From Bacillus subtilis subsp. subtilis str. 168 (lineage in GTDB: Bacteria; Bacillota; Bacilli; Bacillales; Bacillaceae): 64,000 nt of DNA. The translations under genes and the position numbers were made by a program. Under the pieces are notes generated by a model. That model saw only the letters and a list, made by a program, of their open reading frames with translations, did no database searches and was not told where the DNA came from. Shown here piece after piece: positions 19,276 to 34,306 of this stretch. Numbering within the stretch: position 1 is the stretch's first letter; each line of letters begins with the position of its first letter. The stretch spans positions 1,984,001 to 2,048,000 of the forward strand of contig NC_000964.3 in assembly GCF_000009045.1 (NCBI RefSeq). Direction: 5' to 3'.

Positions 19276-19348
19276 CGCTCTAGGAGAGATTCGAACTCCC
19301 GACCTGCAGTTTAGGAAACTGCTGCACTATCCGCTGTGCTACTAGAGC
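19276..19348 (-). tRNA. tRNA-Arg, anticodon CCT (reads AGG), no encoded CCA
   Basis: Minus strand GCTCTAG...CTAGAGC-G acceptor stem, anticodon arm GCAGT-TTCCTAA-ACTGC, T-loop GTTCGAATC; followed by TTA, not CCA. Confidence 0.97.
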
Positions 19349-19400: not shown

Positions 19401-19946
19401 TTAAAGCCCTCCAAAAACCTTATATGCGGCTCTTGTCGTATCTTCATCAATACCGATATACCGCATTGTAATTGATGGTGATGAATGATTCAGTATTCTC
19501 TGCAGCTCGGCGATGTCTTTCGTTCGCTGATAAAAATGATAGCCAAACGTTTTCCGGAGTGTATGCGTCCCTATCTCCTCAAGTCCGCACGCTGCAGCGG
19601 CCTCTCTTAAAATTCTGTAGGCCTGAATGCGGGAAATCGGCTTCCTGGTCCGCACTGATTTAAAAAGATATTCGTTTTCCTTCATGTCTTTCGTATACTC
19701 GTATATTTCCTGTTTCAGCGATTCTAAAATAAGAATCTTTCTTTTCTTTTTCGTTTTGCTTTCAGTCGCCCATAAATGATCTTTATTTTGAACGTCCTTC
19801 ACTTGCAGCGGCAGAATATCAGAAATACGGAGCGCGCTGTTGATGCCGAAAATAAACAGAAAATAATCCCGCTTGTTTTTGTTAAGCAAATACTGTTTGA
19901 CTTCTTGGATTTTCTCTAGACTGCGAATCGGCTGTACAATATGCAT
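19401..19946 (-). CDS. yoeC: Small tyrosine recombinase (phage integrase family), 181 aa
   Basis: Catalytic set appears intact: LRISD (R), KTKK (K), HTLRKTF (HxxR), LNHSS (H), RYIG (Y). AAGGAG RBS 7 nt before ATG 19946. Confidence 0.92.
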   Translation of the reverse strand: MHIVQPIRSLEKIQEVKQYLLNKNKRDYFLFIFGINSALRISDILPLQVKDVQNKDHLWATESKTKKKRKILILESLKQEIYEYTKDMKENEYLFKSVRTRKPISRIQAYRILREAAAACGLEEIGTHTLRKTFGYHFYQRTKDIAELQRILNHSSPSITMRYIGIDEDTTRAAYKVFGGL

Positions 19947-19967
19947 CAAAAAACTCCTTAAAAACCG

Positions 19968-19999
19968 TTATGTAACATTTTGAGGTCTATGTTACTATT
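19968..19999. repeat. Inverted-repeat site 1 upstream of yoeC
   Basis: TTATGTAACA-ttttgaggtcta-TGTTACTATT. Confidence 0.75.
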
Positions 20000-20024
20000 A
20001 TAGCTGAAAAACGTTGAATGTCAA
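19997..20024 (-). promoter_or_regulatory. SigA promoter of yoeC
   Basis: TTGACA (20024-20019) -N16- TATAAT (20002-19997), both perfect consensus hexamers. Confidence 0.8.
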
Positions 20025-20037
20025 AGTGCGGCGGCGT

Positions 20038-20069
20038 TTATGTAACATAATATACATAGTGTTACATAA
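20038..20069. repeat. Inverted-repeat site 2 upstream of yoeC (perfect 10-bp arms)
   Basis: TTATGTAACA-taatatacatag-TGTTACATAA. Confidence 0.85.
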
Positions 20070-20233
20070 GCTTTTAAAAAAGCTTCTTCCAACCTTCACC
20101 CTATAAAATAAGCTTTAAAGCCTCTTATAAAGCTTTTAACCTCTTGGATACTTATCCCCCTACTAATCATCAAAAAACCTCTTAAAATGAAATCTGACAC
20201 TCCCAATTTTCTGGAGCTTCCGCAAAAATATAC

Positions 20234-20261
20234 AAAAAAAGACACAATTTCAAATTGTGTC
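20234..20261 (-). terminator. Intrinsic terminator after yoeD
   Basis: GACACAATTT/AAATTGTGTC stem with an A7 run on its left. Confidence 0.75.
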
Positions 20262-20492
20262 CTAATCCTCATCCTTTACATCAATATCTTCCGGGATCGG
20301 TTCATTTAATATTTCCTGCACAAGTGCTTTGTAATTCTCCAGCTGTTCGAGATGCGTTTTGAACTGTTCCTTATAAATCAAAAATTGCTCCCCGTCATGA
20401 ACGGCTCTGATTTTCCCTTCGAGCACCAAGCTTTTAATATAATCCTCTGAAAGATTTGTATATTCTGCTGTTTCTTCAATCGTTAAATACAT
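20262..20492 (-). CDS. yoeD: Excisionase-like helix-turn-helix protein, 76 aa
   Basis: MYLTIEETAEYTNLSEDYIKSLVLEGKIRAV matches the Xis/HTH_17 pattern; acidic C-terminal tail; GAAGGG RBS. Confidence 0.8.
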   Translation of the reverse strand: MYLTIEETAEYTNLSEDYIKSLVLEGKIRAVHDGEQFLIYKEQFKTHLEQLENYKALVQEILNEPIPEDIDVKDED

Positions 20493-33885: not shown

Positions 33886-34254
33886 TTAAAAATTATCTGA
33901 GAGAGCTTTTTCAATCAGTTTTTTACAGCGATCCAGCTCTACCTTCAGCTGTTTTTTATATAGCTTGGCAGCTTCGTAATCTTTAAATTGATAGAGGACG
34001 ACTTCCTGGAGCTTAGCCCCTTCTTTTTTTACTTTAATTTGTTTTAGTATCCCGTCATCAAGAAGCTCATGCAAAGACCGGTATACTTCTGTATGATTTG
34101 GTTTAAAACCAATCTCTTTAAATTCAGACCGAAGTACTTCAAGCAGCTTTAACCCATAGAGTCTCTCTTGCTCTGTCATCGTTATCATATAAAGCTTCAA
34201 AAATGCGCGCTGTTTCACTAAAAAGCCTGTTGAACTCCTTTTTTCTTCTTTCAT
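33886..34254 (-). CDS. rtp: Replication terminator protein
   Basis: 122 aa, MKEEKRSSTGFLVKQRAFLKLY...; adjacent to Ter sites. Confidence 0.97.
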   Translation of the reverse strand: MKEEKRSSTGFLVKQRAFLKLYMITMTEQERLYGLKLLEVLRSEFKEIGFKPNHTEVYRSLHELLDDGILKQIKVKKEGAKLQEVVLYQFKDYEAAKLYKKQLKVELDRCKKLIEKALSDNF

Positions 34255-34276
34255 CATATGCACTCCTTCTTCTGTC

Positions 34277-34306
34277 ACTGACAACACTATGTACTAAATA
34301 TTCAAT
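34277..34306 (+). other. Replication terminator TerII (IRII), RTP-binding site
   Basis: ACTGACAACACTATGTACTAAATATTCAAT matches the Ter core CTATGTACYAAATRTTCA; lies in the rtp leader. Confidence 0.9.

Follow-up and report, generated by a model that had tools for sequence, protein, structure and literature searches.

A minimal tyrosine recombinase of Bacillus subtilis and the two dif-like palindromes around its promoter: a predicted autoregulatory module with a single putative recombination site

The DNA analyzed here, referred to as the window, is a stretch of 64,000 nucleotides from the chromosome of Bacillus subtilis subsp. subtilis str. 168 (NC_000964.3, positions 1,984,001 to 2,048,000 of the forward strand). 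Its subject is yoeC (19401-19946 of the window, minus strand), which encodes a tyrosine recombinase of 181 amino acids (aa) consisting of the catalytic domain only, together with two palindromic sites that lie on either side of the yoeC promoter. In the favored explanation, which is given a probability of roughly 0.6 and draws on sequence comparison, both palindromes are the cognate sites of YoeC: the proximal one (site 1) would act with the distal one (site 2) to autoregulate the gene, and site 2 would also be a complete recombination site that has no partner nearby.

Site 1 (19968-19999, core 19970-19997), the candidate operator, reads TTATGTAACA-N12-TGTTACTATT, and site 2 (20038-20069, 28-bp core 20040-20067), the full core site, reads TTATGTAACA-N12-TGTTACATAA; neither is assigned to a strand. 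A repeat-family search of the window found that the same 11-mer, TTATGTAACAT, opens both sites, with its two starts 70 bp apart, and the letters and the 70-bp register given for the sites in a preliminary description of this DNA match the window sequence exactly. The motif TGTAACA-N12-TGTTAC occurs in the window at sites 1 and 2 only, where chance would supply 0.07 copies, and none of 100 shuffles reaches the observed count. The description of the two as inverted-repeat sites stands in full for site 2, a perfect 10-nucleotide (nt) inverted repeat with a 12-nt spacer, but site 1 is weaker than claimed. Perfect complementarity between its arms is limited to GTAACAT/ATGTTAC, and when the sites are parsed as two 11-bp arms around a 6-bp center (11-6-11), site 1 scores 7/11 and site 2 scores 9/11. 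Read in the orientation of yoeC, this parse yields TAGTAACATAG-ACCTCA-AAATGTTACAT for site 1 and ATGTAACACTA-TGTATA-TTATGTTACAT for site 2, with centers that are unrelated in either orientation. The 13-6-13 or 12-8-12 parse proposed earlier is replaced by 11-6-11, which is how sites parse throughout the family.

The yoeC promoter (PyoeC) lies between the two sites on the minus strand and matches the sigma-A-type hexamers at 12/12 positions, with the -35 hexamer TTGACA at 20024-20019, a 16-nt spacer and the -10 hexamer TATAAT at 20002-19997. The -10 hexamer shares 3 nt with the outer end of site 1, so the perfect TTGACA-N16-TATAAT that had been placed between the sites, with its -10 running into site 1, is found as described. 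Transcription would start about 7 nt downstream of the -10 hexamer, near 19990, and relative to this predicted start the site 1 core would span approximately -7 to +21 and the site 2 core approximately -77 to -50. The ribosome-binding site AAGGAG (19954-19959, minus strand) is conserved in the B. subtilis-group alignment and stands 7 nt before the ATG at 19946. This ATG is most likely the true start, yielding 181 aa as in database homologs; it lies 3 nt inside the TTG start given in the list of open reading frames. Site 1 overlaps the -10 and the predicted +1 positions of the promoter, a conserved geometry that is that of an operator.

YoeC itself is an intact, selected and minimal tyrosine recombinase, judged by its domain coverage, family length, invariant catalytic residues, low ratio of nonsynonymous to synonymous substitution rates (dN/dS) and single-domain model. 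The PF00589 match covers residues 24-166 of 181-182 (E = 8e-26), and in an alignment of 18 diverse members the catalytic residues R41, K65, H129, R132, H155 and Y164 are invariant, giving YoeC the catalytic residues within a conserved fold that mark the tyrosine recombinase superfamily. Comparisons of yoeC within the B. subtilis group, where synonymous divergence ranges from 0.15 to more than 1, give a dN/dS of 0.02-0.04, indicating strong purifying selection. An AlphaFold2 model shows one domain with a predicted local distance difference test score of 90; its best matches in the PDB are XerA (template modeling score 0.79) and XerH, along with the isolated catalytic domains of the HP1 and P2 integrases. 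A database search returned 5787 homologs, and among the best 120 of these nearly all are 179-192 aa long, with a few up to 214 aa; most belong to Bacillales, and Clostridia and gut Melainabacteria contribute some. At 90% clustering the family exceeds 5,000 proteins, carried on chromosomes, plasmids and phages. A truncated phage integrase was considered and rejected, since the family is conserved in length, has no core-binding domain and keeps its catalytic residues. An insertion sequence-like element with terminal inverted repeats was likewise rejected, as the gene is present in a single copy per genome, is 50-60% diverged between species and is syntenic within groups.

By sequence, YoeC belongs to neither the Xer nor the FimB/FimE group. 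The NCBIfam models for XerA, XerD, XerC and XerS align to it through their C-terminal halves alone, at 47-93 bits against cut-offs of 220-335, so that neither the two-domain build of Xer proteins (core-binding plus catalytic) nor equivalog-level similarity to them is seen. The NCBIfam 'tyrosine-type DNA invertase' models show the same N-terminal offset, with YoeC residues 25-166 aligned to positions 25-173 of 198. YoeC also falls outside the FimB/FimE sequence subfamily, because it scores well under the curated cut-offs (41 bits for PRK09871, where 222 is needed, and 27.8 for PRK09870, where 221 is needed). It does have the build of those proteins, being a single domain of 181 aa where FimB/FimE-like recombinases have about 180-200 aa and no N-terminal core-binding domain.

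To evaluate conservation of the sites, the spacer between yoeD and yoeC was aligned for nine species ranging from B. subtilis to B. siamensis and B. nakamurai. No stretch of unchanged columns is longer than the 30 at site 2, its center included, and the surroundings of this site are highly variable; no insertions at site 2 were seen in these species. At site 1, the invariant positions are the -10 hexamer with the left arm (block CTATAATAGTAACATA at the -10), a CTCAA block and the right half-site GTTAC, while the remaining spacer positions vary. The -35 hexamer TTGACA is kept in 7/9 species and reads TTATCA in B. nakamurai and B. siamensis. That the center of site 2 is invariant and the spacer of site 1 is variable suggests a function for site 2 that needs the center itself, such as cleavage or strand exchange. 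Direct and inverted repeats rich in AAGCTT, such as AAGCTTTTAAAAAAGCTT and AAGCCTCTTATAAAGCTT, lie just upstream of site 2 (20068-20137). Their conservation within the B. subtilis group is partial (TTAAAAGCTTTATA...GGCTTTAAA), and they could be binding sites for YoeD, the protein encoded upstream of yoeC.

The same layout recurs in the nearest outgroups, Bacillus sp. FSL R10-2789, Cytobacillus depressus and Halalkalibacterium halodurans, whose recombinases are 65-67% identical to YoeC and whose genes sit in unrelated neighborhoods with no YoeD and no tRNA. All three have, in order, a distal palindrome, a strong promoter (TTGATA-17-TATAAT, TTGATA-17-TATACT and TTGATT-18-TATAAT), a proximal palindrome at or just after the -10 hexamer, an extra half-site and a ribosome-binding site. 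The proximal site abuts the -10 hexamer in two of them (L081 and L082) and lies a few nucleotides downstream in the third (L083), and the register from distal to proximal site is exactly 70 bp in 4/5 lineages. Conservation of the motif upstream of YoeC homologs, a point raised in the preliminary description, extends through the B. subtilis group and these outgroups to many relatives of 35-60% identity, some of them on plasmids or in phages. No gene other than that of the recombinase is present at every site-bearing locus. YoeD homologs were found at B. subtilis-group loci only among the approximately 150 loci examined, and YoeD was therefore rejected as a conserved partner.

A survey of 80 genome loci defined a common grammar for the family's sites. 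Each parses as 11-6-11, with four variable outer nucleotides, ACA-N-AA(T), a 6-bp center that is usually T-N4-A, and the mirror arm; TGTATA, the center of site 2, is the commonest center among relatives. Arms fall into types by clade (GTAACA, CTAACA, GCAACA, GAAACA and others), and these types cluster on the recombinase tree, with 20 changes against a shuffled mean of 36.5 and 0/200 shuffles as low, although the shared ancestry of related sequences inflates such statistics. Exact copies of a locus's own arm hexamer are concentrated in the stretch from the distal site to the start codon, where 27 were observed and 3.9 would be expected (a 7-fold enrichment); 18/27 non-redundant loci have at least one copy. 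Two sites each occur in L039, L024, L017 and L082. Domibacillus aminovorans (L067, 156-3521) carries five 11-6-11 sites upstream of its recombinase gene, 0.5-1.15 kb apart, with near-identical GCAACATAA arms, five different centers (TGCCTA, TAGCAA, TATAAA, TAGGAA and TGTTAA) and small unrelated open reading frames between them, an array that looks like an integron or an accretion array. In nine loci (L010, L012, L017, L022, L024, L028, L039, L045 and L098), a GC-rich terminator-like hairpin such as AAAAAAGCCTTTATTTTAAAGGTTTTTT stands between the distal site and the recombinase promoter; it is missing from the B. subtilis clade, and in an invertible cassette it would stop read-through from or into the flank.

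Site 2 has the architecture of a dif site, with 28 bp made up of two 11-bp arms and a 6-bp center. Compared with the dif sequences printed in PMC3025954, it matches E. coli dif at 19/28 positions overall and at 17/18 in the right-hand 18 nt, sharing the center TGTATA and 10/11 nt of the XerD arm, and it matches B. subtilis dif at 14/18 in the right-hand 18 nt. The resemblance of the arms to the XerD arm of dif, remarked on before, is therefore close for site 2. This likeness, along with the position of a gene for the DNA-binding HTH_17 protein YoeD just upstream, is what speaks for binding of the palindromes by a protein other than YoeC, either YoeD or the host RipX/CodV. Such an arrangement is improbable: no site-bearing locus outside the B. 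subtilis group has a YoeD homolog, a conserved host Xer protein would not explain arm sequences that vary with the recombinase clade, and the sites travel with the recombinase gene on plasmids and phages.

Evidence that sites of this type recombine comes from relatives in which they are paired. In ten loci (L008, L009, L010, L013, L014, L015, L037, L065, L079 and L080), the recombinase gene lies between two sites 0.7-0.85 kb apart, and in L057 a site pair brackets a 210-bp segment beside the recombinase gene; the 6-bp centers are exact reverse complements in all eleven. A scan of metagenomes for TGTAACA-N3-TGTATA-N3-TGTTACA returned 43 contigs, 16 of which encode a YoeC-like protein (34-100% identity) adjoining the site. 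Six contigs carry inverted site pairs, either 140-150 bp or about 700 bp apart, and no direct pairs were present among the metagenome contigs scanned.

In Aneurinibacillus aneurinilyticus, whose recombinase is about 60% identical to YoeC, the cassette inverts between its sites. The 855-bp cassette has opposite orientations in GCA_000466385 (L088) and in L087, L089 and L090, which encode an identical 187-aa protein; the flanks are 99.5% identical and the breakpoints fall inside both 28-bp sites. Two further independent assemblies (L095 and L096) contain the cassette as a stand-alone 855-bp contig with both ends in sites, and L092-L094 are grouped with them as assemblies that break exactly at both 28-bp sites. 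Such breaks are the pattern expected if both orientations are present in the sequenced culture. The gene beside the cassette encodes an EAL-domain protein, toward which the recombinase gene points in L008 and L010 and from which it points away in L013 and L015, an arrangement that recalls the phase-variable cyclic di-GMP (c-di-GMP) phosphodiesterase switch of C. difficile. In gut Melainabacteria and uncultured genomes (L079, L080, L050, L037, L065, L016 and L057), the cassette is located at the 5' end of genes for proteins of about 1250-1340 aa with no Pfam hit; the large gene is downstream and co-directional in L079, and upstream and divergent in L080. L050 has two paralogous genes with bactofilin-domain hits, one on each side of the recombinase gene, which suggests an either/or switch. 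A literature search for small recombinases encoded inside Firmicutes invertons found nothing specific.

With a promoter flanked by two similar palindromic sites, and with invertible segments of 140-210 bp beside the recombinase gene elsewhere in the family (L057 and L112), the 38-bp promoter segment between sites 1 and 2 could be read as an invertible switch like fimS. This is hardly credible. Real pairs in relatives have exactly complementary centers, and the centers TGTATA and ACCTCA are unrelated, as are those of the distal and proximal sites in each of the three outgroups. Every genome examined has the promoter directed at yoeC (nine of the B. subtilis group, four metagenome contigs and three outgroups), and neither identical inverted centers nor both orientations are seen between sites 1 and 2. 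The promoter segment is judged not to be invertible because the centers differ, no second TGTATA site is nearby and the orientation is fixed. The case made earlier against inversion between the two sites agrees with the unrelated centers and with the single promoter orientation in all 12 YoeC-clade genomes. An inverted-repeat segment is seen in both orientations in the relative of about 60% identity, whereas the B. subtilis locus has a fixed orientation and no second matching site. Where relatives have the second inverted site, B. subtilis has tRNA-Arg(CCU) (19276-19348, minus strand), 52 bp past yoeC, and no remnant of a second site was found between the yoeC stop codon and the tRNA gene, a spacer occupied by the conserved promoter of the tRNA. 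Resolution of hairpins at the palindromes by a protelomerase-like reaction was rejected by reasoning, because the 6-bp centers are not self-complementary.

The favored explanation can be set out as a mechanism. Each site would consist of two inverted GTAACA-bearing arms around a 6-bp center, with one YoeC monomer bound per arm. YoeC on site 1, abutting the -10 hexamer and covering the transcription start, would block RNA polymerase at this very strong promoter and keep yoeC expression low, and binding there may be cooperative with site 2, which lies 70 bp upstream in a register conserved within the clade. Site 2 would be a recombination-grade core, homologous to the end-sites of the inverting cassettes of about 0.85 kb in relatives, and the B. 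subtilis locus would be a single-site module. On this account YoeC would bind its sites, repress its own gene and remain catalytically active in B. subtilis. A gene that did nothing beyond repressing itself would not persist, and conservation extends to the catalytic residues; YoeC therefore probably still recombines something, be it site 2 with an identical copy or unrecognized sites elsewhere. The reading in the preliminary description, which favored autorepression or a site with its partner elsewhere, agrees in essence with this account.

Loss of that activity is the alternative at this point: YoeC would have been domesticated into a DNA-binding regulator, and the sites would be pure operators at which no recombination takes place. 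In its favor, both sites bracket a consensus promoter in fixed register, no partner site lies nearby and every genome examined shows one orientation. It is nevertheless unlikely that YoeC is only a regulator, given that a mere binder would be expected to lose its Tyr or Arg over time and that all six catalytic residues are invariant with a dN/dS of about 0.03. No other target gene is known, and close relatives invert DNA.

Several points weigh against the favored explanation, in addition to the inflation of the co-variation statistics by shared ancestry. Selection would not keep a gene whose sole effect is on itself, so some output function has yet to be accounted for. A spacing of 70 bp does not amount to a whole number of helical turns and does not obviously favor looping between the sites. 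No partner for either site exists in the window, where the best match outside the sites themselves reaches 19/28, and collections of phages and plasmids gave weak partial matches only for site 2, apart from one perfect match in NZ_CP154897.1. This 147.8-kb linear "plasmid unnamed1" of B. amyloliquefaciens Fad 97 (L097; PLSDB) carries yoeA-iseA-yoeD-ggt in chromosomal order, lacks yoeC in its PLSDB gene table and is probably a chromosome fragment mislabeled as a plasmid. A scan of viral contigs for the site returned one unrelated contig, a giant-virus metagenome-assembled genome in IMG/VR (L085 and L113, 6612-6637) with a perfect site-like palindrome, ATATGTAACAATATATACAGATTGTTACATAT; a YoeC-like gene was not detected on it, and the palindrome may be due to chance or to a mis-binned contig. 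Finally, a second example of both orientations was sought in the species carrying the homolog P0113, which has flanking inverted sites, and 10/10 assemblies show one orientation; paired sites are for this reason no guarantee of frequent switching.

The empty searches for a second copy of site 2, or for a mobile element carrying it, also count against the strongest competitor, a possible but clearly less probable account in which recombination takes place at site 2 as a lone site, after the manner of Cre/loxP, XerS/difSL or plasmid resolution. The partner of site 2 would be the sister, dimer or incoming copy, and the overlap with the promoter would be secondary. Such an account draws strength from the family, where the single-site module is the commonest layout, being found on Macrococcus plasmids, in phages beside terminase genes and at many chromosomal loci. 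It is also consistent with the conserved catalytic residues, with an invariant center at site 2 and a variable one at site 1, as fits a need for center identity, and with a location in the terminus region, the replication terminator protein gene rtp (33886-34287; PF02334, E = 2e-54) being about 14 kb from yoeC. Against it, B. subtilis is already equipped with the recombinases CodV/RipX and with dif, the GC skew is negative on the plus strand over the whole window with no sign change, and site 2 is free of insertions in the nine species.

Plasmid and phage copies have the single-site layout. Many small mobilizable plasmids of Macrococcus and Macrococcoides (9-24 kb; L098 and H26-H37) carry a site close to site 2 in sequence, and on p19Msa1047-4 the site lies 128 bp upstream of the gene for a 188-aa YoeC homolog of 49% identity. 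Site and recombinase together form a candidate plasmid multimer-resolution module. In a phage clade comprising Bacillus phage 11143 (L086), Streptococcus phage Javan427 (L152) and Geobacillus phage GR1 (L153), the recombinase gene directly follows that of an ArpU-type late regulator and just precedes the terminase genes; further loci of this clade are L043, L046, L055, L056, L058, L060, L062-L064, L072, L075 and L077. The upstream layout of yoeC recurs in phage GR1, and phage Javan427 has a single 11-6-11 site, ATTAGACAGAA-TATAAG-ATATGTCTAAT, between recombinase and terminase.

The wider locus consists of yoeA, iseA (yoeB), tRNA-Arg(CCU), yoeC, yoeD and ggt. Upstream of yoeC, yoeD (20262-20492, minus strand) encodes a 76-aa HTH_17 protein of the excisionase family and is followed by an intrinsic terminator (20239-20263, minus strand) whose stem is invariant in the B. 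subtilis-group alignment and which insulates PyoeC from upstream transcription. The presence of integrase-family, excisionase-family and tRNA genes side by side raises the alternative that an element integrated at tRNA-Arg has decayed, leaving yoeD-yoeC as its integrase/excisionase end and the palindromes as functionless attachment-site remnants. This is very improbable. The tRNA gene presents its 5' end to yoeC, not its 3' end, and has its own promoter (TTGAAA-17-TACTAT, 19390-19362), which is invariant in the B. subtilis group. Direct repeats were not found, and neither attachment repeats with the tRNA 3' end nor integrase N-terminal domains are present. At 181 aa the protein has the usual length of its family and is not truncated, gene and sites alike are strongly constrained, and the site layout exists elsewhere without tRNA or YoeD, linkage of yoeC to tRNA-Arg(CCU) being limited to the B. 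subtilis group.

Set against known systems, YoeC resembles the FimB/FimE recombinases acting on fimS in E. coli, and also MrpI, in having about 180-200 aa, no core-binding domain and a gene that adjoins the sites, and its relatives likewise invert short, promoter-sized segments (140-210 bp) or a cassette. The sites differ, those of YoeC being 28-bp dif-like 11-6-11 palindromes and those of fimS being 9-bp inverted repeats with flanking half-sites. Moreover, many YoeC relatives have the recombinase gene inside the invertible DNA, and B. subtilis has no second site. Xer/dif systems (XerS/difSL, XerH/difH and XerA/dif) share with YoeC the best sequence and structure matches (XerA, XerD, XerC and XerH), the 11-6-11 site, a locus in the region of rtp and a site adjoining the recombinase gene, as is the case for the xerS and xerH genes. 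YoeC departs from them in lacking a core-binding domain, in the likeness of both arms to each other, in the overlap of its sites with the enzyme's own promoter, in the use of the sites by relatives for inversion rather than dimer resolution, and in the absence of a skew inflection at the site.

Overlap of recombinase sites with the recombinase's own promoter, where binding would autoregulate the gene, is familiar from the resolvase and res of Tn3/gamma-delta and from TnpI and its IRS sites in Tn4430. The former enzyme is a serine recombinase, the latter is a tyrosine recombinase of full length whose substrates are the direct repeats in a transposon cointegrate, and the yoeC locus differs from both in having no transposon and one full site only. 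Hin, which acts on the H segment, is a serine invertase whose gene lies inside the segment it inverts. An 844-bp inverton that encloses a recombinase gene was reported on one earlier occasion, as a fimbrial switch of Providencia stuartii bounded by 14-bp imperfect repeats and located beside fimbrial genes (PMC5903667). The segments of about 0.74-0.86 kb bounded by inverted sites in which YoeC relatives sit are nearly equal in size to the P. stuartii element, while the B. subtilis locus differs from it and from Hin in having no second repeat. With Cre/loxP of phage P1, the B. subtilis locus has in common a single palindromic core site adjoining the recombinase gene, and phage YoeC homologs and their sites stand immediately before the terminase genes much as lox-cre stands near pac in P1. 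Cre has a core-binding domain and a 13-8-13 site. By these analogies, the YoeC system may be described as a FimB/FimE-type invertase with Xer/dif-style sites and a resolvase-like promoter overlap, lying outside both families by sequence membership.

A full-text literature search found no functional work on yoeC and no work specific to yoeC or yoeD, leaving yoeC as an unstudied gene in the best-studied Gram-positive model. What has been annotated as a "putative phage integrase fragment" becomes, on the present analysis, a minimal tyrosine recombinase that is intact, has defined 28-bp sites and probably regulates its own gene, and whose relatives flip DNA. The site grammar of the YoeC family should help to predict invertons and resolution sites across many Firmicutes and gut bacteria and to explain assembly breaks such as the 855-bp contigs. 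At 181 aa, YoeC might provide a very small site-specific recombinase for genetic tools, and if it turned out not to recombine DNA, it would clearly exemplify a recombinase retained for regulation. A bolder and rather doubtful proposal is that YoeC and site 2 still function as a self-contained recombination module in the terminus region, whether Cre/loxP-like between sister copies, independent of CodV/RipX, or as an invertase acting in trans on unrecognized 11-6-11 sites in other parts of the genome, and that the YoeC family constitutes a widespread and undescribed class of self-inverting cassettes that carry their own recombinase. If this were true, such cassettes in Bacillales, Clostridia and gut Melainabacteria would switch neighboring genes, among them those for large surface proteins and c-di-GMP phosphodiesterases, and B. 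subtilis 168 would offer a tractable model for their biochemistry.

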